Below are positions 5,501 to 64,000 of a stretch of DNA of 64,000 bases, piece by piece; position 1 is the first letter of the stretch, and every line of letters begins with the position of its first letter. The position numbers and the translations under genes were made by a program. Origin of the DNA: Malacoraja senta (Eukaryota); NCBI GenBank assembly GCA_038087875.1, contig JAXLNO010005863.1, positions 62,001-126,000 of the forward strand. The letters run 5' to 3'. The notes under the pieces are model-generated. The model was not told where the DNA came from. It saw only the letters and a list, made by a program, of their open reading frames with translations, and did no database searches.

Positions 5501-7408
5501 TGAGTGCGCTATAGTAGCTTATTGGGATTGACATTTATCACAAATAGATGATACATTTGGGAAAATTTTATGAATTTTAGTTTTCGAATAATATAATCTA
5601 TGTAAAATTTTAAATTGTATTAAAGTGTGTCTTACATTAATCGAACATTTATGCACGTTTAATAAGTATTCATTCCAACTTTCCTTTGAAATTTTAATAG
5701 CTAACTCTTGTTCCCAGTCTCTTCTGATACCCTCCGTAGGTGGTATTTGTACATTTAAAATAATATTATACAAATATGATATTAAGTTTGCTGATTCCGC
5801 TTTTATCTGCATTGCCTCGTCCAATACATCTACTGGGTTATTATAATAATCTTTTGTATATTTTTTCAAATAGTCGCATATTTGAAAATATTTAAAATAT
5901 TGATTATTTCCGAGTTTATATTTTATTTGTAATTGTTGAAATGAAAGTAATTTTCCAGTTTCATACAAGTCACCAAGCGTTTTAATTCCTAGTCTATCCC
6001 ATTGTGTATAAGCTTTATCTATAATAGAAGGACTAAACGAAGGGTTATTGACTATAGGTAATAAAAGTGATAAATTTCTTAATTTTAAATTTTGTTTTAT
6101 TTGTTTCCAAATTCGGATTGTACTATGAATAATTGGGTTCTTATTATAATTTATGTTATTCAGTTTCATTGGAGAGAGGAGGATCGCTCCAATGTTTCTA
6201 GAGGAGCAATCCTCTTTCTCCATTACAATCCAGTCTACTTGCTGGGCGGAGTTATCCATCAGTTGAATCATGTTTTTAATATTTACTGACCAATAATAAT
6301 ACATAAAATTAGGTAGTGCTAAACCCCCCAATACTTTAGGTTTATTCAGATGAGTTTTTTGTATTCTATGTGATTTATAGTCCCATATAAAATTAGTGAT
6401 ATCTGAGTCGAGTTTTTTAAAAAACTTCTTAGGTAAGTATATAGGAATTGATTGAAATAGGTATAAAATTTGTGGTAAAAAGATCATTTTTATTGCATTT
6501 ATTCGGCCTATTAAAGACATCGGGAGCGTTTTCCAGAATTTAATTAGTGTATTTAATTTATTAAGTAGGGGGTCAAAATTTGCCCTGAACATACCTTGAT
6601 ATGATCTGGTAATTTCGATTCCCAAATATTTAAATTTTTCTGTAGCTATTTTAAAAGGGAATTTTAAAAGATGTGTTGAATCTTTCGGTTTTATTGACAT
6701 AATTTCACTTTTATTCCAATTTATTCTATATCCAGAAAAAGATCCAAAGTCTTCAATTAAATTTAATATATTTGGTATAGTGATTTGAGGTTTTGTAATA
6801 TACAGTAATATATCATCCGCGTATAAAGATATTTTATTATATGAGTCTTTAGTATTATATCCATGAATATCAGGGTGTATTCTAATTTTTTCTGCTAGCG
6901 GTTCAATAATGAGAGCAAACAGCTGTGGTGATAATGAGCATCCTTGTCTATTTCCCCTTGATAGTTGAAATTTCGAGGATAATATGTTATTAGTTAGTAT
7001 TCTAGCTGTAGGTTTGTTATATAGTAACTTAATCCATAAAATAAAATTCACTCCCAGTTGAAATTTTTGTAATACTTTGTCCATATAATTCCATTCTACT
7101 TGATCAAATGCTTTTTCAGCATCCAGCGAAATAATTGATAATTCTTGATCTTCAGATTTGTGTGAGTGCATTATGTTGAGTAGACATCTCATATTATTAG
7201 AAGAGTATCTCTTAGGGATAAACCCTGTCTGATCTGGGTTTATTAATTTACTAATGTATTTACTTAATCTTCTAGCTAATGTTTTCGCTAATATTTTTTG
7301 ATCTGTGTTTAACAATGCTATAGCTCTATATGAACCAGGTTCAGAAACCTGCAGGACTTGACCATTAAAAGGAAGTGTAGGAAAGTTCAAAAAGTAGCAC
7401 ATAAGTAA
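2535..7408 (+). pseudogene. P-element/THAP9-like DNA transposase, fragmented and split by an L1 insertion
   Basis: Acceptor ttttccttggcag at 2534. ORFs 2572-3228 (LYHQSPR..LPSISSLRRW..VSFDEMSLR..LVFMVRGLFGKWKQPVGY), 3241-3474 (VVCDQGPSN..HDPPHMLK), 3455-3670 (FSKMRVNKAAQVLSHSVA) and 4126-4707 (LAYIAGY). The C-terminus LKFKNRNLQDLTIKRKCRKVQKVAHK* rejoins across the L1 (stop 7406-7408). Confidence 0.85.
4729..7342 (-). mobile_element. 5'-truncated L1-clade LINE (RT plus C-terminal Cys/His motif) with poly(A) and 17-bp TSD
   Basis: RT motifs SLDAEKAFD, RQGCSLSP, LYADD, FKYLGI in ORF 5519-7693. One stop at 5519, then the frame continues to 5153. Poly(T) on + at ~4727-4739. TSD agaaacctgcaggactt at 4712-4728 and 7343-7359. 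Confidence 0.93.
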
Positions 7409-7724
7409 AGTACATGATGTTGTTGAATTATATATTGATGAAATACACTCATTTATGTACATAGTGTGAAATTGTGATTTGTTAACGGCACAAAACAATG
7501 CAAATGGCGATTTATTTATTATTGTATCTACGTTGGACATTTTGCCCTTTGGTGTAAGCAGGGGTGGGGCTATCATTGTGTTACATACGTTGAATTGTAC
7601 ATCACTTTCATTGGTTAGCTGATATGCTGAACACTGTAACCCTGTATATCTCGCGCACAGAATAATGTGAATTATGTAAATCTTACCATGCATGTCAGAA
7701 ATGAAATGTGTTAACCATGTTTTG

Positions 7725-13704: not shown

Positions 13705-14790
13705 AGTCAAGTCAAGTCAAGTCAAGTCACATTTATTTATATCGCACATTTAAAAACAACTCTCGTTGGCCAAAGTGCTTTACATTGGTATAAGAATAGT
13801 ATAACAACAAACTACATACATATAGCCCTCGCTCAGAGGACGTCAAGAAAGGCTTGGGAGTACAGATGAGTTTTTAGTCTCGACTTAAAGGAGTCGATGG
13901 AGGGGGCAGTTCTGATGGGAAGAGGGATGCTGTTCCACAGTCTAGGAGTTGCAACCGCAAAGCGCGGTCGCCCCTGAGCTTATGCCTAGACCGCGGGATA
14001 TTCAGCAACCCTAAGTCGGCCGATCTGAGGGACGTGGAGGTGGTGTGGTGGGTAGCAGACTTTTATGTAGGTGGGGGCAAGCCCATTGAGGGCTTTGTAG
14101 ACATAAAGGAGGATCTTGAAATTTATTCGGAACCGCACAGGGAGCCAGTGGAGAGAGGCCAGGATCGGGGTGATGTGGTCCCTTTTTCAGGTGCCCGTCA
14201 GGAGTCTCGCTGCAGCGTTTTGAACCAGTTGCAGGCGGGACAGGGAAGATTGGCTGATGCCAGTGTAAAGGGAGTTGCAATAATCTAGGCGGGAGGAGAT
14301 AAATGTGTGGATGATCTTTTCGAGGTCATCAAACTGGAGGAATTGTTTTATTTTAGCTATCGTCCGAAGCTGAAAGAAGCTAGCTTTTACCACGGCATTG
14401 ATTTGTTTGTCAAATTTCAGTGCTGAGTCAAATATCACCCCAAGGTTTTTGACGTGAGGTTTGAGTAGTGGGGTAAGGCTTCCAAGGCTGCCTGCTATCA
14501 TTTTGATTGAGTCCGAGGGGCCGAGAAGGATGACCTCAGACTTACTCTTGTTTAGTTGGAGGAAGTTCTGGGCCATCCAACACTTTATATCCTCGAGGCA
14601 GTGGATAAGGTTAAGCAGATTTGATTGTTTTTTGGGCTTTAGGGGGAGATAGAGTTGTGTATGCTCTGCGTAGCAATGGGAGGAAATGCCGTGCCTTTCA
14701 ATGACTTGGCCTAAGGGGAGCATATCCAGGGAGAAGAGAATGGGGCCAAGGATGGAACCTTGTGGAACCCCACAGCGGAGACTAGCTGAG
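13705..14790 (-). mobile_element. L2-clade LINE 3' part (RT), decayed
   Basis: GVPQGSILGPILF..YAEHTQLY (degenerate YADD)..NFLQLNKSKSE..LGVIFDS..SRLDYCNSLY..LQLVQNAAARLLT. (gtcaa)n tail at ~13705-13728. Confidence 0.88.
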
Positions 14791-17132
14791 ACTAGATTAG
14801 AAATACAGCATGGAAACAAGCCCTTCAGCCCACCGAGTCCGTGCCGACCAGCGATCTCGCACACTAACACTATTCTACACACTAGGGACAATTTCCAATT
14901 TTACCAAAGCCAGTTAATCTACAAACTTGTGTAAGAATGAATTGCACATACTGGTTTAAACCGAAGATAGACATTAAAAGCTGGAGTAACTCAGCGGGAC
15001 AGGCAGCATCTCCGGAGAGAAGGAATGGATGACGTTTTGGGTTGAGACCCTTCTTCAGACTTGTACAAACTTGTACGTCTTTGCCGTGTGTGAGGAAACC
15101 GGCGCACGCAGAGAGAACCTACGCAGGTCATGGGGAGAACGCACAAACTCCGTATTCCGTAAGGACAGCACTCGTAGTCAGGATCAAACCCGGGTCTCTA
15201 GCGCTATGAGGCAGCAACTCTACCGCTGCACCACCTTCTATGTCTGTGTACACAAACAACATAAGGAGAAACAGCTCAGCTGGCAGAGGAACAGAGGCAA
15301 TTGTTTCCTGGTCAACTGTAAAAGTCAGAGAAATCACAAAATGAAAGGTTTAAAACATGAGTGAAGTGTGTGAGGCCCTGTGCAGACAGAAAGTCTACAG
15401 CTTGTATCTGACAAATGCATTCTAGAGTGTCACTCCCAGGGAAGCACAGCCACTGAACAATTGTAATCACACAAATAAATGTGTGAATGGGTGCACTCCA
15501 CCTTCAACTTCCAAAGCTGCTGAGCACATCATTGTTGATGTTAGCGTTTCTTGTGAGCAGAGTTTTTTTTCTCTCTTTTCAAACACTTTATTTTTGTCAA
15601 ACCTTTGAGTCTTAGACTTCCAGATTGCATCTAAATGCAAGCTAAACTTTGCATTTCTACATCTCTAGTGGCCACAGGAACTGCATCAGAACTGAATCTA
15701 TCCGTCTCCTTTACGTCGATTAGCTTTCCAAATTCCAATCAGCAACTGAAGAATTGATGCAGACATGTGACTCTCTCAGAATGCTGAAAAGGGCGAGAGG
15801 TTTCTCAGAGCAACTTGTAAACCTGTCTGAAGAAGGGTTTCGGCCCGAAACGTTACCTATTTCCTTCGCTCCATAGATGCTGCTGCACCCGCTGAGTTTC
15901 TCCAGCATTTTTGTGTACCTTTGTAAACCTGCCATCCTGTTTACCCTGTTAAAAGACAACTTTCAGCCCAAGGAATTTGTTGTGTAGGAAGAAACTGCAG
16001 ATGCTGGTTTAAACGGAAGATAGACAGAAAAAGCTGGAGCAACTCAGCGGGACACACAAATGTGAAGAAGGGTCTCGACCTAAAACGTCACCTATTCCTT
16101 TTCTCCAGAAATGCTGTCTGACCCGCTGAGTTACTCCAGCTTTTTCTATTTATTTCTAGGAATCAGCTCCCTGCTCTGTCACTGGATCTTTGACTTTCTG
16201 ACCCACAGACCACAAGCAGTGAGAATAGGTGAAACCTCCTCCATAATATTACTCAATACAACGATGCCAAGCAACGATGCGTTCTCAGTCCATTACTAAA
16301 CTCCCTATACACTCACGACTGTACGGCCAAATTCAACGCTAACTCCATCCACAAGTTTTGAGGTGACACCAATGTACTGGGCTGCACTAGACAATTGCCT
16401 AACCGCCAGTGACCTTGGTAGAAACAAAAAACTGCAGATGCTGGTTTATACCAAAGATAGACACAAAGTACTGGAGTAACTCACTGGGTCAGAATTATTG
16501 CAGGTGTGTGACTATGAGAAGGCAACAGGTGTCTCAGAGCAACCTGTAAACTGAACACTAGTCATCCTGTTAAGGCAACATTCACTAAACCTTGCTCACC
16601 TGGCCTTGCCTTTCTCCTCTGGCAGCCAGCTGCTGCCTCTGCTCCTCAGCCAGAAGGCTCATGATAAATCTACAAAGGATGCCTCTTGCACTTTCCACCA
16701 CCCACCCCCACCCACTGACTTTTCCCAATACACAGCCGACAGAGCAGTGGGCCTGCCCCGCATCTCTAATCCCAAAACAATGAGAAACATAGCAAATAGG
16801 TGCAGGAGTAGGCCATTCGGCCCTTCGAGCCGTTTAATATGGCTGCTCATCCAAAATCAGTACCCCGTCCCTGCTTTCTCTCCATATCCCTTGATTCCGT
16901 TGGCACTAAGAGCTTGGCCGTTAGCCGTAAGAATTGGGCAAGATTTTCTGTGGGACATGGTAGGATTGTTAAACTAATCATTTCCAAGCAAGGCTCATTC
17001 ATGAATGTATGAAATGTAATTTAATTTGTAAACAACACCACTAACCTTGGACTGTGGTGTAGTTTACAAATATATGATCATCTTGTTGACATGCGTTGAG
17101 TTTCTGATCAGATTGAGACTTTGGAGTCTCAT

Positions 17133-40600: not shown

Positions 40601-42535
40601 GTTCACAGCAAGGCTTTGGAATTTGTAAAGAAATGTAATGACAGGATTTCACAGATGAATATGGATGAAAATCAAACATTGGAAATTATTGCGTTGGAAA
40701 CAGCATTGCCAGTTAAGAGGCAGAGGAAGAAGAAAAGAATGGCAGATGAGCTTATTGATGATGAAAGAAATTCCTCAGATTCTCTAGCTGATTTTTGAGT
40801 AAATGTGTTTAACCCAATAATGGATCGCATTGTCCAGTCACTAGAATCACGCTTTGTACAACACAAACAGTTGTATAAAGATGTGTCCTGCTTGGACCCA
40901 GCAAAGTTTAAAACTATTGCAGAGAAGGGCCTTGAAGATGAAGCATTGGAAGGCATTATTAAGCTGTTTCCACAAATCAGCAAAGATCAAGTAATATTGG
41001 AATTGTTTTCTTTTGCTTCAAACTTTGATGTATTAAAGTTGCTTAATGATGGTGAGAATATGGATTCCAGTTGCAACAATTGTAAAATGTGCAGCACTTG
41101 CCCATCGAGTGTACTAAACATTCTGGCATCCAACAGACTTCATGACTTGATAAAGGCATATGATAACCTTTATCAACTTTATAAAGTCATCTGCACACTA
41201 TCAGTTACTCAAGTCCAATGTGAGAGGACATTTTCAAAGCTAAAGATCATAAAGACAAGGTTAAGAAATTCGCTGTCTGAGGGGAATTTGGAATCATACA
41301 TGTTGCTAACCATTGAAAAGGAATTGTTAGATGAATTGGATGCAGAAGCAATTATTAGCAGATTCGCACAATCATCTAGCGAACACAAACGATTGCTCTT
41401 AATATAGTGGACTGCATGCAATGCTCTATTGTGCTTTTCAACTATCTGTTAATGTGTAAATTGTGCAGTAAATTATTTAAAAATATCAACCAATTATTTA
41501 AAATTTAAAAAAAATTAAATTATAACATTCTGTATTTACATTCGGTATCTACTGCCAGTAATATGTACAGTACATGTACACTGTAATTACTAAGAACCAT
41601 TTTTTTCACAAACATTTTAAATTGTACCCTTTTTTCCATATGTATTTTTTGAAAAATTTATTTATTCGTCGTCTCCTGGCCACCAATATTTTTAGACCCA
41701 GTCCGCCACTGCTTGCAGCACTCCACTCGCCACTTCCTGCCATTCTGAAAAGGACCCGTTCACTCCTACTCTTTGCTTCCGGTCTGCCAACCAATTTTCT
41801 ATCCATGTCAACACCTTACCCCCAATACCATGTGCTCTAATTTTAGTCACCAGTGTCCCGTGCGGGACCTTATCAAAGGCTTTCTGAAAGTCCAGGTACA
41901 CTACATCCACTGGCACCCCTTCATCCATTTTACTTGTCACATCCTCAAAAAATTCCAGAAGATTAGTCAAGCATGATTTCCCTTTCATAAATCCATGTTG
42001 ACGGACTAATCCTTTTACTGCTATCCAAATGCCCCATTATTACCTCTTTAATAATTGACTCCAGCATCTTTCCCACCACCGAAGTCAGGCTAACTGGTCT
42101 GTAATTCCCCGTTTTCTCTCTCGCTCCTTTCTTGAAAAGTGGGATAACATTAGCTATCCTCCAATCCACAGGAACTGATCCTGAATCTATTGAACATTGG
42201 AAAATGATCACCAATGCATCCACTATTTATAGAGCCACCCCCCTGAGGACCCTGGGATGCAGACCATCAGGTCCAGGGGATTTATGATCCTTCAGTCCCA
42301 TTAGCCTACCCAATACTATTTCTCGCCTAATGAAAATGTATTTCAGTTCCTCTACCCCCTTAGATCCTCTGTCCTCCAGTACACCTGGGAGATTGTTTGT
42401 GTCTTCCTTAGTGAAGACAGATCCGAAGTACCTATTCAACTCTTCTGCCATTTCCTTGTTGCCCATAATAATTTCACCCGTGTCTGCCTTCAAGGGACCC
42501 ACGTTTGACTTTGCTACCGTTTTTCCCTTAACATC
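37700..42535 (-). mobile_element. CR1 LINE RT, split by a hAT insertion (37700-38717 and 41712-42535)
   Basis: RT ORFs 42227-42502, 41963-42223, 41692-41988 (SCLTNLLEFFE..YLDFQKAFDKVPH), resuming at 38435-38758 (PQGSVLGPQLFTIYINDL..FADDTKL). Confidence 0.9.
38718..41711 (+). mobile_element. hAT DNA transposon (ZMYM1-like transposase, decayed) with 14-bp TIRs and 8-bp TSD
   Basis: TIRs cagtggcggactgg (38718) and ccagtccgccactg (41698-41711). TSD cttgcggc / cttgcagc. Transposase fragments 39757-41407 include WCNAHVLNLV, ETRWS and the dimerisation motif VTQVQCERTFSKLKIIKTRLRNSL. Confidence 0.93.
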
Positions 42536-48300: not shown

Positions 48301-49224
48301 AAAACTATGAGAGGCATAGATGGGATAGAGAGTCAGAAACTTTTCCACAGGGTGGAAAGTAATGGAGAGCATAGTTTTCAGGTGAGTGGGACATGGTGTA
48401 AAGGGCCATGTATTAATAGAAGGCTCAATGAGAGATTTCTGCACTGATGTTGAGACTGTGCTGCACGTTTACACCTAGACACAACTTTAAACTGAGCTCA
48501 TGTCTCTCCTCCCAGCTGAAAAAAAAGACGCATGGTATTACCTCAAATAAGGGCTGGGAAATTATTACACATGCATTGTCCAATTTTTATTACTTAAGCA
48601 ATAACAGTAAAGTGGACTAAAGACAGACACAAAAATGTTAGATGGAGCTCTAGGGGCTGGTGGAATCAAGGGATATGGGGAGAAGGCAGGCATTCATTGG
48701 GGACGATCAGCCATGATCACCATGAATGGCGGTGCTGGCTCCAAGGGCTGAATGGCCTCCTCCTGCACCTATTTTCTATGCTTCTAAAAAGATGGAGTAA
48801 CTCAGCAGGTCAGGCAGCACTTCTGGGAAAAAGGAAAAGGTGACGATTTGTGTCGAGACTCTTCCCGAAATGTCACCTACTCCTTTCCCCCAGAAATGCT
48901 GCCTGACCCGCTGAGTTACTCCAGCTTTTTGCATCTGCCTACAGTAAAACAAGCATCTGCAGTTCCTTCCTACACAGTAAAGTAGACTATCTGGTTTATC
49001 TAAAACTGCAGTTTGTGGAATTGACTGCATTCTGAATTGTAAAATAGTTATACTTTGAGAAACATCTATTCGGTTGTAAGATGCTATGTGAAATATGATT
49101 TTGTAATTGTTGTCCTTAAAACACCAATATAATCCCTACCATAAAACCTGATCCTTAAACTGTATTCACTGGTAATTAGTGACCAGAACAAGTGGTCTCA
49201 TTCCCATTGTTATCAGGTTTGTGT

Positions 49225-49341
49225 ACACATGGACCAATAATTAGCTTCACAGCAGAGTTCTGTTAAAAAAGTACAAGAGATTAAGTTACTGTTGCTGCAT
49301 TTACTCTCCTGGTTAAATAGTGCTGTGGGCGGCTGTTAAAC
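49225..49341 (+). promoter_or_regulatory. Putative proximal promoter of the MHC-I-like gene
   Basis: CCAAT at 49234-49238, A/T-rich ttaaaaaa near 49263, GC-box-like gtgggcggc near 49325. Motif-level evidence only. Confidence 0.3.
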
Positions 49342-49393
49342 ATGCTTCTTTTTACCTTACTCAACACTTACGGTGTGGCCACTGTCTCCTCTG
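49342..49393 (+). CDS. MHC-I-like leader exon: MLLFTLLNTYGVATVSS(D)
   Basis: aaacATG start, hydrophobic signal peptide, G|gtaagc phase-1 donor that joins alpha1 in frame. Confidence 0.75.
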
Positions 49394-52300
49394 GTAAGCA
49401 ATGCTCCTTCTACTTGTGAACTTTGAGGAAACAACAAAACTGATTCTATTTACTGTTGCACAGTCCCTGTGTTTGCCCTGGGTACATTGTCTTGGATGTA
49501 TTAATTGAATGATTGAATTGAATGTATTAATAATTTTGGGTAACGGTCATTCCTGAGTTGTAAAAGCACCTGTGGGAAGTTATATACACTATGGTTACCT
49601 TGGCAATCCAATGAACAGAGGAACTGAATACAGGTAAATAATGAACATAGAACATAGGACAATACAGCACAGGAGCAGTTCCTTCAGTCCTTCAGTCTGA
49701 AGAAGGGTCTCGACCTGAAACGTCACCCATTCCTTTTATCCAGAGATGCTGCCTGACCTGCTGAGTTACTCCAGCATTTTGTCTACCTTCGCCCACAATG
49801 TCTGTGCCGAACAAAATAAACTAATCTCCTCTACCTGTATGTGATCTGTATCCGGCCATTCCCTGCCTATCTATGTACCTATCTAAAAGCCTCTGAAATG
49901 TAACTGTTATATCTGCCACCACCATCACCACCACTGGCAGCGCAGTACAGGTGTCCACCACCCTCCACATAAAACAACTTGCTCCGCTCATCTCCTTTGA
50001 ACATTGCTTCTCCAACCTTAAAGTGATGTTCTCTGGTCTTCAACATTTCCACCCTGGGAAAAAGGTTCTGGCTGTCCACTCTGTCTGTGCCTCTCACCAT
50101 GTTATGCACTTTCATCAGGTCTCCCTTCAACCTCCAGTATACAAGAGAAAACAATCCATGTTTGTCCAATCTGTTCTTGCACTAATACCTCAGACAGAAT
50201 TCAGGTAAACCGGTGATGTGCACTTTCAATAAAGAAGTGACTTCTGCATTAGTAGGTGTTCCACCTCTCCAAGATTTCCTCAGCTGGTGTTAGACACCCA
50301 CATGATGGTAAAATTCAGCCTGCATCAAATGACAAATCAATGTTGTGTTAATGTTGTTGCCATCTTGTTGTTTGTTGCATGCTTCCTGTACTGCAGACCC
50401 TATCCATTACATCACCACCACTTCCATATAACCATATAATCATATAACCATTACAGCACGGAAACAGGCCATCTCGGCCCTTCAAGTCCGTGCCGAACAC
50501 TTTTTTTTTCCTTCCCCCTTCTTTCTTCTTACTTCCCCCTAGTCCCATCTACCTGCACCCAGACCATATCCTTCCATTCCTTTCCCGTCCATATACCCAT
50601 CCAATCTATTTTTAAAGGATAAAATCGAACCTGCCTCCACCACTTCCACTGGAAGCTCATTCCACACAGCTACCACTCTCTGAGTAAAGAAGTTCCCCCT
50701 AATGTTCCCCCTAAACTTCTGTCCCTTAATTCTCAAGTCATGTCCCCTTGTTTGAATCTTCCCTACTCTCAATGGGAAAAGCTTATCCACGTCAACTCTG
50801 TCTAACCCGCTCATAATTTTAAAGACCTCTATCAAGTCCCCTCTTAACCTTCTGCGCTCCAAAGAATAAAGCCCTAACTTGTTCAACCTTTCTCTGTAAC
50901 TTAGTTGCTGAAACCCAGGCAACATTCTAGTAAATCTCCTCTGTACTCTCTCTATTTTGTTGACATCCTTCCTATAATTAGGCGACCAAAATAGTACACC
51001 ATACTCCAGAATTGGCCTCACCAATGCCTTGTACAATTTTAACATTACATCCCAACTTCTATATTCAATGCTCTGATTTATAAAGGCCAGCACACCAAAA
51101 GCTTTCTTTACCACACTATCTACATGAGATTCCACCTTCAGGGAACTATGCACAGTTATTCCTAGATCCCTCTGTTCAACTGCATTCCTCAATTCGCTAC
51201 CATTTACCATGTACGTCCTATTTTGATTTGTCCTGCCGAGATGTAGCACCTCACATTTATCAGCATTAAACTCCATCTGCCATCTTTCAGCCCACTCTTC
51301 CAAATGGCCTAAATCTCTCTGTAGACTTTGAAAATCTACTTCATTATCCACAACACCACCTATCTTAGTATCATCTGCATACTTACTAATCCAATTTTCC
51401 ACACCATCATCCAGATCATTGATGTACATGACAAACAACAGTGGACCCAACACAGACCCCTGAGGCACCCCACTGGTCACCGGCCTCCAACCTGACAAAC
51501 AGCCATCCACCATTACTCTCTGGCATCTCCCATTCAGCCACTGTTGAATCCATCTTGCTACTCCACCATTAATACCGAACAATTGAATCTTCTTAACCAA
51601 CCTTCCATGAGGAACCTTGTCAAAGGCCTTACTGAAGTCCATATAGACAACATCCACTGCTTTACCCTCATCAATTTCGCTAGTAACCTCTTCGAAAAAT
51701 TCAAGAAGATTAGTCAAACATGACCTTCCAGGCACAAATCCATGTTGACTGTTCCTAATCAGACCCTGCTTATCCAGATGCTTATATATATTATCTCTAA
51801 GTATCCTTTCCATTAATTTGCCCACCACTGACGTCAAACTAACAGGTCTATAATTGCTTTGTTTACTCTCACAACCCTTTTTAAACAACGGAACAACATG
51901 CGCAGTACGCCAATCCTCCGGCACTATTCCTGTTTCTAATGACATTTGAAATATTTTTGTCATAGCCCCTGCTATTTCTACACTAACTTCCCTCACTGTC
52001 CTAGAAAATATCCTGTCAGGACCTGGAGACTTATCCATTTTCATATTTTTCAAAAGTGTCCGCACCTCCTCTTATTTGAATCTCATAGTTTCCATTGCTA
52101 CTCTGCTTGTTTCCCTTACCTCACATAATTCCATATCCTTCTCCTTGGTGAATACCGAAGAAAAAAAATTGTTCAATATCTCCCCCATCTCTTTTGGCTC
52201 TGCAGATAGCTGTCCACTCTGACTCTCTAATGGACCAATTTTATTCCTTGTTATCCTTTTTCTATTAATATAGCTGTAGAAACCCTTTGGATTTACTTTC

Positions 52301-55300
52301 ACCTTACTTGCAAAAGCAACCTCATATCTTCTTTTAGCTTTTCTAATTTATTTCTTAATATTCTTTTTACATTCTTTATACTCCTCAAGCACCTCATTTA
52401 CTCCATGCTGGCAATAATTATTGTAGATCTCTCTCTTTTTCCGAACCAAGTGTCCAATTTCCCTTGAAAACCATGGCTCTTTCCAATTTTTACTATTTCC
52501 TTTCAACCGAACAGGGACATAAAGATTCTGTACTCTTAAAATGTCACCTTTAAATGTCCTCCATTTCTCTACTACATCCTTCCCATAAAACAACATGTCC
52601 CAATTCACTCCTTTTAAATCCTTTCGCATCTCCTCAAAGTTAGACTTTCTCCAATCAAAAATTTTAACCCTAGGTCCAGTTCTGATCCTCTCCATAATTA
52701 TATTGAAACTAATGGTATTGTGATCACTGGACCCGAAGTGCTCCCCAACGCCCACCTCCGCCACCTGCCCTGTCTCATTTCCTAACAGGAGGTCCAGCAC
52801 TGCCCCTTCTTTAGTAGGTACCTCTATGTATTGCTGCAAAAAACTATCCTGCACACATTTTACAAATTCCAAACCATCCAGCCCTTTTACAGTATGTGTT
52901 TCCCAGTCTAAGTGTGGAAAATTGAAATCTCCCACAATCACTACCTTGTGCTTACTACTAATATCTGCTATCTCCTTACATATTTGCTCTTCCAATTCTT
53001 GCTCCCCATTAGGCAGTCTATAATACACCCCTATATGTGTTGCTACACCTTTCCCATTTCTCAGTTCCACCCAAATAGCCTCCCTAGACGAGCCCTCTAC
53101 TCTATCCTGCCAAAGCACTGCTGTAATATCTTCCTTGACAAGCAATGCAACACCCCCACCTCTTGACCCTCCAATTCTATCACACCAGAAGCAACGAAAT
53201 CCTGGAATATTTAGTTTCCAATCACAGCCCTCCTGCAACCATGTGTCACTGATCGCCACAACAACATACTTCCAGGTGTCAATCCAGGCTCTATCCACGA
53301 CTTCCCCAGAAGACGATAATGAGATTTAAGAAGCTTGAGGATAGGCACGTGGATATGTAGGGACTTGAGGGATATGAATCATGTACAAGCAGTTTAGTTT
53401 AACTTGACATCATGTTCGGCACAGACATTGTGGCTGAGCTCTAACCCATTACACCCTTAATGAACAAAAATATATCAATCTAAATCTGGAAATTTTCAAG
53501 TGGGCAACATATTCAACAGATTACAGAATCGAGAACCAGAAGACATAGGTTTAAATTGAGGGGGGGGGGGGAAGATTTAATGGGAATCTGATGAGCAATT
53601 TCTTCCCACACAATGCTTCCTTTCTAACTATTCTGACAATCGTGAAGGCTTGGAGATTACAAACCTACTCATCCTGAAAGTTTAATCCCATTGTTATCAG
53701 ATGAAAGTAAATATAAAATGGTGATTCCCCTGTTGAAATAATAACATATAAAACAAAAATCCTTGGTTGTGGAGTGTTTTGGGAAGTCACGTGGATTTTA
53801 TCATTACTGTATTCCACTAGCCTTCTTATGTTTCTCCTGGTAACACTGAAACAGACACTTCTAACTCTCCCTTTGGGGCCCCTTCTCACCTCACTTTGAC
53901 ACTGAACTTTGACACTGTCTGGTGTGCTGCATGGAAACTTTATCACAGAACAAATACTGCTTATTCATGTAGAAACAAGAAAATGCAGATGCTGGTTAAT
54001 ACACATAAAATGCTGGAGTAATTCAGCAGGTCAGGCAGTATGTCTGGAGAACATGGATAGGTGATGTTTCAGTTTAGACATCAGTTTAGATGTGTAAGAA
54101 GGAACTGCAGATGCTGATTTAAACCGAAGATAGACACAAAAAGCTGGAGTAACTCAGCGGGACATGCAGCATCTCTGGAGAGACGAAATGGGTGATGTTT
54201 CGCGTCTAGACCCTTCTTCAGACTGGTGATGCAGATGCTGGTTTACACCGAAGATAGACACAAAAAGCTGGAGTAAATCAGGAAGTCAGGCAGCATCGCT
54301 GGAGAAAAGGAATAGATGGCGTTTCAGGTCAAGGCACTTCTTCAGACAGAGTCGGGGGTATATCTTTTATTAATTTGTTCTATGTACCTTTTCATATCGC
54401 TTGGTTCCCTGTCTCCTGATTCTCAGTCTGAAGAAGGGTCTCGACCCGAAACGTCACCTTTTCCTTTTCTCCGGAGATGCTGCCTGACCCACTAAGTTAC
54501 TCCAGTATGTGTCGAGTTTCAGTTTAGACCCTGTTTATTATAGTCTGCTCCGACCCCACCCCCACCCCCCACCCCACCCAAGCCTTGATAGTCGGGACTC
54601 ATCAGTAAGGTCTTCTTTACACTTACTGTTACAGAATCCCAATGTCCTCATAAGTCAGAAGTGCCCCATTCCATGCAGAGATTTCCCACCAGATGGGCAT
54701 TTCAGGGTTGCAGCTCATAGAGATGGTGCCTATGAGGACCTGGACTCAATCCCGATCTCTACTACAACCTGTGTGGCACTTTTATTCTTTCCCTGAAACC
54801 ATGTGTGCTTCCTCTGGTTATTCCAGTTTCTCCCAATATTCCAAAGATGAGAGGCTGAGAGGTAAATTGGCCAGTGTGAATTGATCGTACATACTGTGAC
54901 CTCCATAATGTTTCGGACAAAGACCCATCATATATTTATTTGCCTCTGTACTCCATAATTTGAGATTTGTAATAGAAAAAAATCACATGTGGTTAAAGTG
55001 CACATTGTCAGATTAAAAAAAAGGCAATTTTTTAAACATTTTGGTTTCACCATGTAGAAATTACAGCAGTCAATTTACATAGTCACAAAATACATAGTCT
55101 GCCCCATTTTAGGGCACCATAATGTTTGGGACACAGCAATGTCATGTAAATGAAAGTAGCCATGTTTAGTATTTTGTTGCATATCCTATGCATGCAATGA
55201 CTGCTTGAAGTCTGTGATTCATGGACATCGCCAGTTGCTGGGTGACTTCTCTGGCGATGCTCTGCCAGGCCTGTATTGCAGCCTGTGCTTGTTTTGGGGG

Positions 55301-58300
55301 CTAGTCCCCATTCAGTTTTCTCTTTGGCATATCAAAGGCATGCTCAGTTGCGTTCAGATCGGGTGATTGTCTTGGCCACTCAAGAATTAACAATTTTTTA
55401 GCTTTGAAAAACTCCTTTGTTGCTTTAGGATCATTGTCTTGCTGTAGTATGAACCGCTGGGCAATGTGTTTTGAGGCCAATGTGTTTGAACTTGAGCATA
55501 TAGGATGTGTCTATACACTTCAGAATTCATTATGCTGCTACCATCAGTAGCTGAATGGTCAACAAAGCTAAGTTAGCCAGTACCTTCAGCAGCCATACAT
55601 GCCCAGCCCACAACACCCCCACCACCGTGTTTCACAGATGAGGTGGTATGCTTTGGATCTAGGGCAGTTCCTTCTCTCCTCCATACTTTGCTCTTGGCAT
55701 CACTCCGATATAAGTTAATCTTTGTATCATCTGTCCAGAAGACCTTTTTCCAGAACTGTGGTTGCTCTTTTAAGTACTTCTTGGCAAACTGTAACCCGGC
55801 CATCCTGTTTTTGCGGCTAAACAGTGGTTTGCATCTTGCAGTGCAGTCTCTGTATTTCTGTTCATGAAGTCTTCTGCGGACAGTGGTCATTGGCAAATCC
55901 ACACCTGACTCCTGATGAGTGTTTCTGACCTGTCAGTCCCTTTGCGATTAGTAAAGGATTGGGGTTTTGTCTTTATTATAGAGAGAAGTCTTCTGTCATC
56001 AGCTGTGGAGGTGTTCCTTGGCCAGCCAGTCCCTTTGCGATTAGTAAGCTCACAGTGCTCTCTTTCTTCTTAATGATGTTCCAAACAGTTTGATTTTGGT
56101 AAGCCTAAGGTTTGGCTGATGTCTCGAACAGTTTTATTCTTGTTTCTCAGTCTCATAATGGTCTCTTTTACTTTCATTGGCACAACTCTGGTCCTCCTGT
56201 TGATGAACAGCAATAAAAGTTTCCAAAGGTGATGGAAAGACTGGAGGAAAGACTAGATGCTGAGTTCTCTTATACCTGCATTAAGGAGGCATTTAAATAC
56301 CCCTGAGCAATTACATACATCTGCGAAGCCATGTCCCAAACATTATGGTGCCCTGAAATGGGGGGACTATGTATAAACACAGGTGTAATTTCTACATGGT
56401 GAAACCAAAATGGGCAAAAAATGAATACATAAGCTTAAAATGAGGGGGGAAAGATTTAATAAGAACCAGAGGCATAGCTTTGGTGGGAGTACTGAATGAA
56501 CTGCCGGAGAAGGGAGTTCAGGCAGGTACTATCGCAACATTTAAGAAACATTTAATCTGGTACATGGATAGATAGGTTTAGAAGGATATGGGCCTCCTCA
56601 GACAGCCGTGGAGCCCACGTCAATGGATATTTCTCAGGTGGATATTGACAGATTCTTGATCAGTATGGGTGTCAAGGGTTATGGGGCGAAAGCAGGGAAT
56701 GTGGTTGAGAGGGCGAGATAGAGCAGCCATGATTGAATTAGGCCATTCAGCCGTAGGCCCTGATTCCCTGCTGTATGACTCTTTGACTTTACCTCTCTAT
56801 GATTTTATAAAATCTCCTTGACGTTGTCCATTTTCTTAATATAATAAAATATTCTTTGAATTTTGGAATATTGTAACTAGTAGGCTGTATCGACATGATA
56901 GATAATAATAGATCTTTGAAGATGGGAAGCAATCCAATAGGATCATTCAATACCTCGACCACAATTGGTGGAATAGGTATCAGAGCCCATCTAGCCAACT
57001 CTTGTAGAAGGCTCAGTGGTGCAGCATTAGAGATGCTGCCTTATCGCCCTTACAGCACCAATGCCCAGGTTGGATCCTGACTACGGGTCCTGTCTGTATG
57101 GAGTTTGTACATTCTCCACCTGACCGGGTGGGTTTTTCCTGAGATCTTCAGATTCTTCCCACATTCCATGACGTACAGGTTTGTAGTTTAATTGGCTTGG
57201 TGTAGAATGTAAATTGTCCCTTGTGTGTGTAGGATAGTGTTAGCGTGTGGGGGTTGCTGGTCAGTGTGGACTCAGTGGCCCGAAGGGCCTGTTTCCATGC
57301 TGTATCTCTAAGCTAAAAACTAAACTAAAGGCTCCTGACACAAATTGTCACCTGATCATTGATGCTGCCTGCCCCACTGAGTTCATCCAGCACTTGCATC
57401 TGCAGGTCCTTGTGACTCCCTTATTCAAAGTTATTGTATTGTTATCAGTTTAATAACTCTTAGTTATTTTCAGTGAATGATACAATCATATTTATTATTG
57501 TTTATGCATTGCAGATTTACACCATCTTGCATCTTACTACCTGTTGAACCATGGATTGAGTGAGCTGCCTGAGTACAGTATGGTAGCAATGCTGGATGAC
57601 CTCCAGATAGCATATTTTGAAAGCACACTAGAGCTGGCTATTCCCAGACAGCGATGGATGGCCCAGTCTTTCCCACAGGATCAATGGGATTCAATGGCCA
57701 TCACAGTTGCAGGTTTTCATGGGATTGTCAGAGGAAATGCTGAGATAGTCTACCAACAGCAACATGGTATCTCGAGTAAGTGTCATGACCGGACCTGGGG
57801 TAGACACCCAGTGATGGAACAAATGGATTTTGTTTTAGTTTTGTTGCTGTCACATGATTCTCTGATACACTTTTTTTGCATGTTAGTCAATCACATCAAA
57901 GAAAACTATTCATAAATACAATCAAACCAAACTCGTACAATAGGTAGAGCAAAGAGTGCAGAATGTAGTTCTCAGCATTGTAAGGCACCAGTGCCAGAGA
58001 CAAAGTCCAGTGTCTACAATGGGGTTGAGGTGAACCCTAGCATAAGGGAGGACTGTTCATAAACCAGACAACATAGGGGAGGAAACAGTTACTGAGTCTG
58101 GTGGTGCACGCTTTAATGCTTACGTACCTTCTGCAGGAAGAAGAAGGAATGACCAGAGCGGGATGAATCTTTGATTATGTTGTCTGCTTTCCTGAACCAG
58201 TTGAAATACAGGTGGATTCACTGGTGGGGAATCATGTTTGTGTGATCGACTGTGCTACATCTCCACCTCCCTGCAATTTCCAGCGGTCTTGGGCAGAACT

Positions 58301-61300
58301 CTTTCCAAACTAAGTTGTGATACAACCTGTCAGTATGCTTTCTATGGCACATTTGTAGACATTTGTAAGAGTCATTGGAGATGCCGCATTTCCTTAGTCT
58401 CCTGAGGCAGTAGGGGAACCAGAAACTCTCAACCTTTTTCACTTCAGCACCATTGATGTAGCAATGTTACAAAATTTTGAGATTTTAAAAATAAAGTCTG
58501 CAATTTATCCCATCAGATAAAGCATAAAAAGAAGTTTAATTTGACACCTAATTCACTTTCATATCTTCAGTATTAAAGAAGTTATGGCCATCTTGTTCCC
58601 TATTGCTTTTCCATTGACTTAACACAAAAGCTGTGATCGAGGACAGTCAAAAGCCCATAACTTTCTTAAAAATTAAGATAACTGAAAGACATTTTCAGTT
58701 ATTATAGATTGAAGCATTCTGAAACAAATATGAAACAATCTTACTTAGAAGACATGAAAGTATGGATGACTTGAAATTAAAGCATATAATTAGTTAGTTA
58801 CCTAATTGTAGCTAATTACAAAATTCAATTACTAGATCTAAACATCTATCAATTTCTTAAGAATAGATTAACATTTTTAAATAGCCTAAGTGTCCAAATA
58901 ACATTCACACAATAATTCACAATATAACATAACTTTTAAATCTCATTTTCATGAATTTACAGGCCAAATGGAAGGAATTGAATGTTTAATACCTGTAAAT
59001 TAATGGGCATTTAATTCATTTTGCGAGTGAGGATTTCTGGAACGCGATCATTTGGAACGTTCATTTGCGGTGAATTTAACCCCGTATTGGCATGAAAAAT
59101 ACTGCCGTTAGTTCGGGGAATAAAATCACCGTGTCGCATGAAAAAATGTGAATTAAAGGCTTCTTAAGAAGCACTTTTATACATTTAAAGAAACCACTTT
59201 CGTTTACCTGTCCCGTGTGTGAAATCCGTCCCCGTTATCGGCGTTGACGCTTCAGGAGCTGCTTTTAAAATTACTCTAGCGCTGACATTGACGATTTAAT
59301 AAAAATAAAAAATTCACAAAACGCCGGTAGGAACGATTCATCAGCCAGCGCTTGTACTCCAACAAAATATTAACTAGGACAAGGAAGGAGAAACCCGCGT
59401 TTTAACCCCGCCCCCCCTTAAAGGCGCCAAAATCGCGCATACGGCCAGTGGCAGAATTACAGCGCGACTGAAGGTAGGTTTTGTAACATACCTAATTGAT
59501 GCTGTTTCAGACATTTACTCCATTACATTTTGATAGAGACACGGCCCATCGCCTATATTTAATGTGTCCTAACTGCTGAACACCCATTGATAACAGTTGG
59601 CTGGTGATAGTCTCTTTATGGGTTAAGCATTTGATATTTAACACCAGTAAAAAGTGGATGGATTGGATCATCTGTTTTATTGGGCTGGAATGAGGGAGAA
59701 ACCATTAGTTTATTTATAGCCTGATCACCTAGAGATGGGACCTTGATTTAAGCTGGTTGATGGTGACTATGATGTATTCCCTCAACAATAATATTCTGTT
59801 AATCCAGCATTCCCTCAATATTGGCAGCAATCCACAGAGAGTGTAGCAATCCCACACTGTGCAACAGCCTTGATGTACTACCCATCTGCATTGCCTTAAC
59901 CTTGAGACTGACCTGTTCACTGTATAACATTGCCCATCTGACAATGCACTCCTTCCTCTGTTCTTTATGTACGAAAGTGCAGAATCTGAGTTCTACCCTT
60001 CTGACACAGCAAAACTCCTTTAGTGTTACATCCACAACAGTAAAGCTTCCCCCCTCAACACTTGAGGTTAGTCCATGCCCTCAGTATATAGACCATGGGT
60101 CATTGAGTCACACATCATGGAAACCGGCCCTTCTGCTCACTGAATCCACACTGATCATCCATTGTGCTAAGATGGAGTCACAGCAAACTGCAGATGCTGC
60201 CAATCTGAATTAAAAACAAACAGGAGGAACTCAACGAGTCAGGCAGCATGCTGTGGACAAATGGACAGAAAACATATGAGACCAGGACCATTTAGAGTAA
60301 TGGAGTAGGGTGGAGAAAGCTGGAAAGAAAAGTAGTCTGTGTAGGATAGTGTTAATATGCGGGGACCACTGGTCAGTGCGGACTCGGTGGGCCGAAGGAC
60401 CTGTTTCGGCGCTGTATCTCTGAACTAAACCTGCTCCTGTGCTGTACAGCTCTATGTTGTGTTCTGTTATGCCTGTTTGTACCATGCTGAGAACTGATTT
60501 GTAAATTGCCTCTCCCTTCCATCCACTCACCCCAACCCAAATCCTCCACCCCTACCTCAGCCCAAGCTGTTTTCTTTGTGCAGGGTTTCTGCGGCTGTGA
60601 AGTGGACAGTGACAATTCCACTGATGGGTTTGTCAGACTGGGTTATGATGGGGAGGATGCCTGTGCTTTTGACAAGGACAGAATGTTCTGGATTGCACTA
60701 CGTCCAGATTTCCAGATGCTAGCAGATCGGTGGAATGTCAACACCTTCATGAACAAGTATTTTAAAGATCTCCTGGAGAAGGACTGTGTGAAGTGGCTGC
60801 GGATATATCTGGAGTGTGGACAAGAAGCACTACAGAGGAGAGGTACACGACGTAGGCACTCTGACTGATGGGCCAGAGGATATCCTCTGGATAGATCAGG
60901 TGGGAAATATCATGCACGTCAGGCTGTCACTTGAGTAATTATTTAGTTTAGTTTAGAGATACAGCTCGGAAGCCCACCGACACCGCACCGAGCAGCCATG
61001 CCCGCACACTAACACTATCCTACACACACTAGGGACAATTTGCATTTATACCAATCCAATTAACCTACAAATTTGTACGTCTTTCGAGCGTGAGGGGAAA
61101 CCGAAGATCTCGGATAAAACCCACGCAGGTCACAGGGAGAACGTACAAACTGTGTAAAAACAAGCACCCGTTAGTTAGTAACAAACCCAGGTCTCTGGCG
61201 CTGTAAGGCAGTAGCTCGATCGCTTCGCCACCCTGTTCTTGGGCGAGGGTATCAGTAAATTGTCTGGCAACATGCCTCTTAGATGGAGCCAGTGGGTAGG

Positions 61301-62324
61301 AAGTGCAAGTGAAAGATAAATATTGTACCAGTGTCCTTTATCCACAGTCATATAGATATTCAGGAAATGGAGGAATATGTATCTTGGTCTTATGTTTAGC
61401 ACCGACCTTGTGGCCTGAAGGGTCTGTTGCTGTGCTGATCAGAAACCCAATCAGATTCTCTATTTGCCTCTATTACTCCTTGGGATGGTGACATTCAATT
61501 TCCAACAGTTCTCTGGTTGAAGAACTTCTTCCTCCCATTCCCTCTTGGAATATTTAGTGTTATTATTCAGCTGAGATTCATGAACAAATAGAAGCAATCA
61601 TGTCTACAGTATCAATCCCAATGGTGAGTTATACTCCTCCATTGGGCCCTGCATTCCCCTTTCATCTGTGCTGTCAGTTCAAGTCTGGAGCTAAGATAAG
61701 GAGCATGTCAGTTGTATTAAAACTAAATGTTTTGTTGTTTTGTCAGAAATGCAAAATGAAAAGAGAAAAGGCTGTAAACCTTGTGCAAGATAGAACTGCA
61801 GATGCTGGTTTACACTGAAGATAGAAGATGTTGGCGTAACTCAGTGGGTCAGAAGCATCTCTGGGCATTCCTTCTCTCCAGAGATGCTGCCTGACCTGCT
61901 GAGTTATTCCAGCATTTTGGGTCTAGGCTGGAAACTTAGTTCAGCCAGAGAAAAAACTCTGATTGGGAAAGTGGTGAGTTGCAGTGATCTTACAATTGAA
62001 GGCTTTTGTTCATGTCTTCACTGATTCTGACGCTTCTTACACTTGCAGAAACCTCTGAGGTGTTTATTGGGATTAAAAGTGATGGGTCGCAATCACTGAG
62101 ACTCTCCTGCCTTGTCACAGGCTTCTAGCCACGGGCCATCGATGTAACGTGGCTGAGAGATGGTGAGGGGGTCCACAAGTCTGAATCCAGTGATGATCTG
62201 TTGCCCAATTGGGATGGGACTTACCAGCTGAAGAATACAATTCAACTGAGTAGAGAAGATGTGGCAAAATTCTCCTGTTACATCGAACATGCAACTCTGC
62301 TGCAGGGAGTCAATGTTCCACAGG
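49342..62324 (+). CDS. Nonclassical MHC class I-like heavy chain gene; premature stop in alpha3 (truncated product or recent pseudogene)
   Basis: Four phase-1 GT-AG exons of class-I-typical size (52, 261, 282, 276 nt) encoding leader, alpha1, alpha2 and an Ig C1 alpha3. Confidence 0.92.
50425..53296 (-). mobile_element. Young CR1 LINE, most of ORF2 (APE endonuclease plus RT), in MHC-like intron 1
   Basis: ORF 52348-53298 (ISDTWL..DRIGGSRGGGVALLV..GVYYRLP..IVGDFNFP..LDLLL..SSDH), 52072-52302, and an uninterrupted 508-aa RT ORF 50539-52065 (DFSKAFD, VPQGSVLGP, YADD). Confidence 0.95.
54892..56425 (-). mobile_element. Tc1-family DNA transposon (IR/DR-type ends), decayed; right TIR truncated
   Basis: ORF 55573-55902 (TVRRRLHE..RCKPL..FWKKVFWTDDTKINL..KHGGGGV). 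Direct repeats ccataatgttt.ggaca at ~54903 and ~55117. 56332-56412 is the reverse complement of ~55040-55133. Confidence 0.88.
57010..57329 (+). mobile_element. tRNA-derived SINE (HE1/V-SINE-like)
   Basis: A/B-box-like head, conserved core, gggccgaagggcctgtttcc..tgtatctctaa tail. Further copies near 60950-61230(-), 62430-62730(-), 62790-63070(-). Confidence 0.8.
57515..57775 (+). CDS. MHC-I-like alpha1 exon
   Basis: ttgcag acceptor, A|gtaagt donor. (D)LHHLASYYLLNHGLSELPEYSMVAMLDDLQIAYFESTLELAIPRQRWMAQSFPQDQWDSMAITVAGFHGIVRGNAEIVYQQQHGIS, fully open. Confidence 0.92.
58460..59493. mobile_element. Putative non-autonomous DNA transposon (~1 kb, AT-rich), possibly Kolobok-like
   Basis: Ends share atgttacaaaa / ttttgtaacat, and the right end reads ..gtaacatacctaa. 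No ORF. Confidence 0.4.
59780..60010 (-). mobile_element. Possible ancient Deu-domain SINE remnant
   Basis: Reverse strand gagtgcattgtcagatg..gccaatattgagggaatg loosely resembles the Deu/SacSINE core; recalled similarity only. Confidence 0.3.
60561..60842 (+). CDS. MHC-I-like alpha2 exon
   Basis: cctacctcag acceptor, G|gtacac donor. (T)QAVFFVQGFCGCEVDSDNSTDGFVRLGYDGEDACAFDKDRMFWIALRPDFQMLADRWNVNTFMNKYFKDLLEKDCVKWLRIYLECGQEALQRR; canonical C101 and C164 present. Confidence 0.93.
62049..62324 (+). CDS. MHC-I-like alpha3 (Ig C1) exon with in-frame TAG at 62126-62128
   Basis: cttgcag acceptor, G|gtaagt donor. (E)TSEVFIGIKSDGSQSLRLSCLVTGF*PRAIDVTWLRDGE..LLPNWDGTYQLKNTIQL..FSCYIEHATL. Not in the ORF track because of the stop. 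Confidence 0.92.
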
Positions 62325-63069
62325 GTAAGTGGCAAGTCAATGCGGCTGATCACTTGAGACAATAAACCTCCTGGACTGAGATAACAGCCTCAACTCACAC
62401 TCTTAACTAAGCTGTGCATTTAGACTTTAAACTTTAGAGATATGGTGCAGATACAGACCCCTCAGCTCACTGAGTCCTCGCTGAACAGTGATCATCCCGT
62501 ACATTTACACTAACCAACACACTGGGGACAAATTACAATTTTACCTAAGCCAAGTAACCTTCAAGCCCATATTTCTTTGGAGTGTGGGAGGGAACCGGAG
62601 CACCCGGAGAAAACCCACGCAGTCACAGGGAGAACATACAATGTCCTTGCAGACAGCACCTGTAGTCAGGATCGAACCCAGGTCTCTGGTGCAGTAAGGA
62701 AGCAGCTCTACTGCTACGCCACTGTGCCACCCATTATTAATTTGTGGTTATCTAATTGCCCAGAATTATTGATAGTCAATGGAATGTGGTTTTAGTTTAA
62801 GAGATACAGCCCAGAAACCAGCCCTTCAGCCCACCGAGTCTGCGTCAACCAGCGATCCCTGCACACTTACATTATCTTACTTATTAGGGGACAATTTACA
62901 ATTATACCAAGCCAATTAACCTACAAACCTGTCTGTCTTTGGACTGAGGGAGGAAACCGGAGATCCAGGCAAAACCCACGCAAGTCCCGGGGAGAAGGTA
63001 CAAAACTCTGTACAGACGGGACCCGTAGTCAGAATTGAACCGGGTCTCTGGCGCTGTAAGGCAGCAGTT

Positions 63070-63880: not shown

Positions 63881-64000
63881 ATTATTCTTGTCACCCTTAA
63901 CTCACACATCCAAATGTAGGAAGCAAGATAGGCTGATCCTGGCCAAGGTCTCTTATCTTATTTCTTGGGCATCTAGCTAATTTTTTTGATAGTAGTTAGT

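Follow-up and report, generated by a model that had tools for sequence, protein, structure and literature searches.

Class I-like proteins that dispense with the alpha3 domain are known. EPCR and the ULBP/RAET1 proteins consist of the alpha1-alpha2 platform alone, and their genes have no alpha3 exon, the membrane anchor being encoded after alpha2. Some isoforms of HLA-G also lack alpha3. Class I genes are likewise known to be silenced by a single nonsense change, as in HLA null alleles and class I pseudogenes, in which the heavy chain is no longer expressed and which belong to the birth-and-death evolution of the family. In elasmobranchs, UFA and UGA are CD1-like class Ib genes according to statements in reviews (PMC10751288, PMC12562908). 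We analysed a 64,000-nt stretch of skate DNA, called the window throughout, in which tblastn with the gene's own exons detected one class I gene. A first-pass annotation had reported that its alpha3 exon is intact except for one stop codon, and had considered a secreted alpha1-alpha2-only product, a null allele, a young pseudogene or a base error. Our analysis leads us to regard the gene, with a probability of about 0.8, as a pseudogene of the non-processed kind, derived from a non-classical MHC class I gene.

The gene lies on the forward strand and its parts are the following (a slash marks an exon border).

49151..49342, + strand: conserved promoter / 5'UTR block preceding the start codon, with a gaccaataa (CCAAT-like) motif
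49343..49394, + strand: leader exon, intact; ATG, MLLFTLLNTYGVATVSS, 1 nt, donor G/gtaagc, phase 1
57515..57775, + strand: alpha1 exon, 261 nt, open reading frame, from ttgcag/ to A/gtaagt
60564..60566, + strand: alpha2 splice acceptor, AAG in the window against CAG in little skate and sawfish
60567..60842, + strand: alpha2 exon, 276 nt, open reading frame, both platform cysteines, Pfam MHC_I match
62049..62324, + strand: alpha3 (Ig C1-set) exon, 276 nt, canonical splice sites, phase 1-1
62126..62128, + strand: premature stop TAG, in GGC TTC TAG CCA, at the Tyr position of GFYP
62187..62194, + strand: window-specific in-frame 3-nt insertion GAT (extra Asp), without counterpart in the relatives

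The leader exon was detected by tblastn with shark leaders as queries, in the window as well as at the little-skate (L001) and sawfish (L003) loci. Over 304 nt, the block before it shows 80% identity with the sawfish orthologue; with little skate the identity is 92.6%. Introns of the window and of little skate cannot be aligned with those of sawfish, unlike this block, and the 80% identity of about 190 nt preceding the ATG indicates that promoter and 5'UTR have been retained. The gene encodes an alpha1-alpha2 platform domain with the disulphide cysteines of alpha2. Its alpha2 domain scores 60.4 bits on Pfam MHC_I (PF00129; cut-off 28.3), and 513 class I chains of the PDB were matched at E<=0.01. 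All exon junctions are in phase 1. Since all introns are kept, with splice sites at orthologous positions, a processed (retro-copied) pseudogene was ruled out. The single last exon of the little-skate orthologue, which encodes connecting peptide, transmembrane segment and tail, lies 2.67 kb 3' of alpha3; that of the window gene would fall past base 64000, outside the window.

The splice sites around alpha2 show some peculiarities. The C>A change at position -3 of the acceptor likely weakens this site, judging from the base change. The canonical donor GAG/gtacac is weak in all three species compared. The NCBI model for little skate (L001:12983-13020) uses a donor 36 nt past the canonical one, which adds GTRPRHSDWWNG, and the zebra-shark model has a similar insertion at this junction. 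The counterpart of the 36-nt extension in the window (60843-60878) contains an in-frame TGA.

An exhaustive HMMER search with alpha2 as query returned a little-skate protein of 359 residues (XP_055486430, P0001; 95% identity), labelled 'MHC class I-related gene protein-like'. In Leucoraja erinacea it is encoded at locus L001. Collinearity between this locus and the window extends from the leader exon to a point 1.3 kb beyond alpha3, and nucleotide identity, counting introns, is 86-91%; the window thus comes from a skate, and L001 is the orthologue of its class I gene. The exons reach 92-96% nucleotide identity; their translations are 86-95% identical to the little-skate protein and align with 11 further orthologues. 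Both genes have the same exon phases and an identical leader peptide. They differ in that the little-skate gene carries TAC (Tyr) where the window carries TAG, stays open through its single transmembrane/cytoplasmic exon and has an alpha3 exon of 273 nt, whereas the window gene has the 3-nt insertion and more replacements at conserved residues.

Searching with the little-skate protein, we found the lineage in 12 shark and ray species, with orthologues 56-72% identical to the query and next-best class I matches at 36% identity or less. Rays are represented by sawfish, manta and stingray with one gene per species, and sharks by sawshark, sevengill, catshark, houndshark, basking, zebra, epaulette and bamboo sharks, again with one gene each except for Pristiophorus, which has two. 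Collinearity and the gap in identity place the window gene in this one-per-species elasmobranch class Ib lineage. Judged by its sequences, the lineage is an old, conserved non-classical class I lineage that carries the NCBI label 'MR1-like'; we found no published name for it in the literature. In the Pristis pectinata locus, the intron that separates alpha3 from the last exon holds a second, degenerate alpha3-like fragment, TADDGAEFSRHIKHVCLLDGL (L003:20619-20752).

The solved structure nearest to the skate orthologue is PDB 9CH4 ('Ig-like domain-containing protein', 207 bits), which belongs to a sister lineage represented by P0026 (about 40-50% identity). 9CH4 has in common with the skate lineage the motifs YxxNHG..LPxYS and AGFHG..KG and the FKxLLExDC helix, and resembles it in its MHC linkage and in a single or low copy number among sharks and rays. 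However, 9CH4 represents the sister lineage and not that of the window gene, and the window copy is probably non-functional. A possible relation of the lineage to UFA/UGA is suggested by its similarity to 9CH4 and by statements made in reviews (PMC10751288, PMC12562908).

We then read the alpha3 exon directly. It is bounded by the acceptor ...cacttgcag/AA at 62047-48 and the donor CAGG/gtaagt at 62325-26, and its translation from 62051 gives TSEVFIGIKSDGSQSLRLSCLVTGF, the stop, and then PRAIDVTWLRDGEGVHKSESSDDLLPNWDGTYQLKNTIQLSREDVAKFSCYIEHATLLQGVNVPQ. Both Ig cysteines (LSC and FSC) and the core Trp (VTW) are kept, no frameshift is present, and the TAG at 62126-62128 is the sole break of the frame, which therefore does not run uninterrupted through alpha3 to the anchor. 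The 65 residues that follow the stop still match Pfam C1-set (PF07654) with 34.7 bits (cut-off 21), as expected of a membrane-proximal Ig C1-set alpha3 on a phase-1 exon of 270-276 nt. These readings bear out what the first-pass annotation had said of the exon: its coordinates, its 276 nt, the splice sites, both Ig cysteines, the Trp and the single TAG. The product it had predicted (leader, alpha1, alpha2 and about 26 residues) also agrees with ours, a 222-residue precursor with a leader of 17 residues and 26 residues of alpha3. Its description of alpha3 as "otherwise intact" holds for the frame, the splice sites, the cysteines and the Trp, but not for the sequence as a whole, which has acquired the 3-nt GAT insertion and a Pro>Ser change at 62054, at the invariant Pro that opens alpha3 (TPEV start). 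The insertion (near 62189-62191; its exact place is ambiguous inside a GATGAT repeat) is missing from organism A, the nearest public genome, from both little-skate copies and from sawfish. Consequently, alpha3 measures 276 nt in the window against 273 nt in every relative.

The position of the stop is otherwise conserved. Tyr occupies it in 12 of 12 orthologous proteins, and the comparison with other species that had been suggested for 62128 showed the codon to be TAC in both little-skate copies (L001 and the paralogue L002) and in sawfish L003, against TAG in the window. The stop thus arose by a C>G transversion (TAC>TAG) on the lineage of the window. We compared the alpha2 and alpha3 region with reads of organism A (runs X1 and X2, two samples). 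These share only about half of the 31-mers of the window, because the two genomes diverge by about 2.4%: over about 1,390 nt the X2 contigs show 34 mismatches, and in the intron the divergence is 3.3%. Contig 6 of X1 (61985-62175) has exactly three mismatches, at 62032, 62054 and 62078; all being accounted for at other sites, it matches the G at 62128. Contig 14 of X2 (61977-62360) has seven mismatches, six of which are listed, none of these six at 62128; the seventh most likely sits near 62291, where the X1 contig breaks. With this one mismatch unplaced, X2 probably carries G at 62128 as well. No TAC-bearing contig is listed for X1 at the stop site.

The stop, having G at 62128 in both copies, predates the split between the window and organism A. 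Other changes are shared too: Leu>Arg at 60801 (in KWLLIYL), Gln>Arg at 62133 and Glu>Gln at 62243 are derived states common to both. Organism A keeps the ancestral state at further sites where the window is derived: CG (Arg) at 60686-7, where the window has Phe through two base changes, C (Pro) at 62054, where it has Ser, G (Glu) at 62177, where it has Lys, and no GAT near 62191. The earlier proposal of a young pseudogene or null allele is supported as to loss of function, but its youth needs a qualification, the stop being older than the split from the nearest public genome. Both samples of organism A also contain minor variants, at 60763, 61482 and 61495 (about 7-20% of depth) and at 62361 and 62394 (about 20-30%), a pattern suggestive of several nearly identical locus copies rather than of simple heterozygosity.

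To describe selection on the coding exons, pairwise omega was calculated by the method of Nei and Gojobori. Between the window and little skate, values were 0.58 for alpha1, 0.50 for alpha2, 1.39 for alpha3 and 0.77-0.78 overall. The baseline between skate and sawfish is 0.23 overall (alpha1 0.25, alpha2 0.10, alpha3 0.38). We also polarised the changes by parsimony with sawfish, L002 and organism A, over 622 replacement and 173 silent sites. The branch of the window gained 13-14 replacement and 3 silent changes, in addition to the nonsense change and the in-frame 3-nt insertion, while the little-skate branch gained 11 and 7. Small as these counts are, the 13-14:3 ratio rejects an omega of 0.25 (binomial p = 0.003; about 0.006 when one ambiguous site is removed) and is compatible with an omega of 1 (p = 0.48). 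Purifying selection on the coding exons is thus not detected in the window gene, on these small counts. After the split from organism A, alpha2 and alpha3 of both copies together changed by 7 replacements, 1 silent substitution and one indel.

The same holds for the platform by itself. Its alpha1 and alpha2 exons show 9 replacement to 2 silent changes on the window branch, which rejects an omega of 0.25 (p = 0.029) and fits neutrality. Alpha1 carries six lineage-specific replacements (F1L, F6S, D35E, R40L, V42I and H56Q), and four of them (F6S, D35E, V42I and H56Q) fall on residues that are invariant or nearly so among the relatives. The comparison of alpha1-alpha2 with alpha3 that the first-pass annotation had called for thus finds the platform compatible with neutrality and the highest pairwise omega in alpha3. 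The alpha3 of the intact little-skate gene is also fast (7 replacement to 2 silent changes). A Fisher test between the window and little-skate branches is not significant (p = 0.16-0.26), so that the argument for relaxed constraint is carried by the comparison with the baseline omega of the lineage.

Taken with the anatomy of the gene, these data point to the following course of events. The TAC>TAG change at the GFYP tyrosine of alpha3 closed the reading frame before the window copy parted from the closest relative with a public genome sequence, now diverged by about 2.4%. Afterwards the coding exons, including the alpha1-alpha2 platform, drifted at about the neutral rate. Nonsense-mediated decay usually follows a 50-55-nt rule for stops upstream of an exon junction. 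Here 196 nt separate the stop from the downstream junction, that with the last (transmembrane/cytoplasmic) exon, so that transcripts carrying it are expected to be cleared by this pathway. Any product that escaped would be the 222-residue precursor, unanchored, with a partial Ig domain in which one Ig cysteine is unpaired, and lacking a complete alpha3 for beta2-microglobulin. Function has thus probably been lost, and the stop may be fixed in the species. Against this reading stands the fact that the stop is the sole lesion that disables the frame, while splice sites, start codon and promoter block are intact; the loss is accordingly not extensive. Readthrough of the stop codon was considered and set aside, as nothing in the sequence favours it.

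The stop could also be a null allele that segregates in the species, or mark one dead copy among several, with a working allele or paralogue elsewhere. We consider this unlikely, although duplication and decay do occur in the lineage: little skate has the intact L001 beside the decayed L002, and the minor variants of organism A, at 7-20% of depth in both of its samples, are what several copies would produce. The stop, however, is common to copies that have diverged by 2.4%, X1 lists no alternative TAC contig, and it is the window copy that aligns collinearly with the intact gene of little skate over the whole span between leader exon and alpha3, both included. Because this possibility departs from a pseudogene only in placing a function elsewhere, the window copy would be dead under both.

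It is quite improbable that the gene makes a functional shortened product, either secreted (alpha1-alpha2 followed by 26 alpha3 residues) or anchored through skipping of alpha3. In favour of such a product, the leader, alpha1 and alpha2 exons are undamaged, as are every splice site and the promoter block, and since all junctions are in phase 1, skipping the 276-nt alpha3 exon would keep the frame. Precedents exist in EPCR, in ULBP/RAET1 and in the HLA-G isoforms without alpha3, and the truncated frame of the window would encode just such a platform. But the platform departs from normal constraint in its 9:2 ratio, residues invariant in the relatives have been replaced in it and the alpha2 acceptor is weakened, all of which argues against a selected alpha1-alpha2-only product. 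Moreover, the position of the stop predicts nonsense-mediated decay, and one Ig cysteine of the truncated chain would lack its partner. The new AG that the mutation introduces offers no way out either: as an acceptor it would yield only an out-of-frame exon, 80 nt being removed, and rescue by this cryptic site was therefore rejected. The secreted product proposed by the first-pass annotation is thus disfavoured by p = 0.03 on the 9:2 ratio, by the F6S, H56Q, D35E and V42I replacements and by the expected decay. The analogy it had drawn to EPCR and ULBP does not fit, as those genes have no alpha3 exon whereas the window has a canonical but broken one. Here the alpha3 exon is complete though interrupted, no anchor is translated and the platform is without detectable constraint; nor does the anchor directly follow alpha2, since in the orthologue the anchor exon comes after alpha3. 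We accordingly give little credence to the idea that the stop-bearing gene is still used, through exon skipping or escape from decay, to make a platform-only class I molecule, whether anchored or secreted. Were a platform-only skate molecule real, it would be a natural intermediate on the road to molecules of the EPCR/ULBP type.

An assembly or base-calling error concealing a true TAC or TAT, in favour of which speaks that the difference amounts to a single base, is very unlikely: at 62128, independent contigs from a genome diverged by about 2.4% carry G at the identical site, and the neighbouring lineage-specific changes and the excess of replacements fit a gene already dead.

The window gene is probably not the only casualty in this lineage. 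The little-skate paralogue L002 (XP_055486496, P0021; JAMYXN010000412.1, 11693-14243) has a TGT>TGA change at the conserved alpha2 cysteine, has lost the AG of the alpha2 acceptor, and a 5-bp deletion has taken out its alpha3 donor; no alpha1 match was found in it. Although L002 carries a protein annotation, its gene model reads through intron sequence and from its lesions it looks like a pseudogene. It resembles the window gene in being a decayed genomic copy of the shared lineage, but its lesions are other, independent ones and its GFYP codon is still TAC. Its state indicates that genes of this lineage do decay in skates. Contigs from organisms B and C (runs X3 and X4) are of the L002 type, with 41 mismatches in 61189-61749 exactly as in L002, and by this resemblance they probably have C at 62128, as L002 does. 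The 5-bp donor deletion at 62322 was seen in X4 alone. Small runs marked 'RNA?' from organism D contain only about 6% of the words of the window, probably repeats.

Like the HLA null alleles and pseudogenes, the window gene is canonical for class I apart from one nonsense change; those cases concern mammalian classical or classical-derived loci, whereas the window gene belongs to a conserved non-classical elasmobranch lineage. Most likely, the locus is an ordinary pseudogene of a known gene family, as birth-and-death evolution predicts, and not a new secreted molecule. Its value for comparative immunology is modest: it belongs to a lineage that sharks and rays have retained, in most species as a single gene, beside the lipid-binding-type UFA/UGA. 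Should no copy in the skate clade turn out to be functional, these skates would amount to a natural knockout of the lineage. For annotation, the locus should read pseudogene rather than 'low-quality' or truncated protein.

The remainder of the window outside the class I gene is rich in transposons. Between positions 1 and 48000, the frames scanned belong to transposons only, and no other host gene was recognised among them. The elements identified by their coding sequence are these.

2572-3228: P-element/THAP-like transposase, upstream part of the window
5519-7693 and 14187-14891: reverse transcriptase open reading frames, upstream part of the window
40805-41407: hAT dimerisation domain, upstream part of the window
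50539..53298, - strand: LINE fragment in intron 1, noncoding for the class I gene (Pfam RVT_1 5e-36, Exo_endo_phos 2e-13)

The LINE of intron 1 retains long open reading frames, for a reverse transcriptase of 508 residues and an endonuclease of 316 residues, and looks like a fairly young insertion. Intron 2 contains about 1 kb of AT-rich sequence (GC 0.28; 58459-59494) that is not in the little-skate orthologue. Two SINE-like repeats in intron 3 (60924-61243 and 61756-61947) draw contigs with depths in the millions in each of the four skate runs, and thus belong to very high-copy families common to these species.
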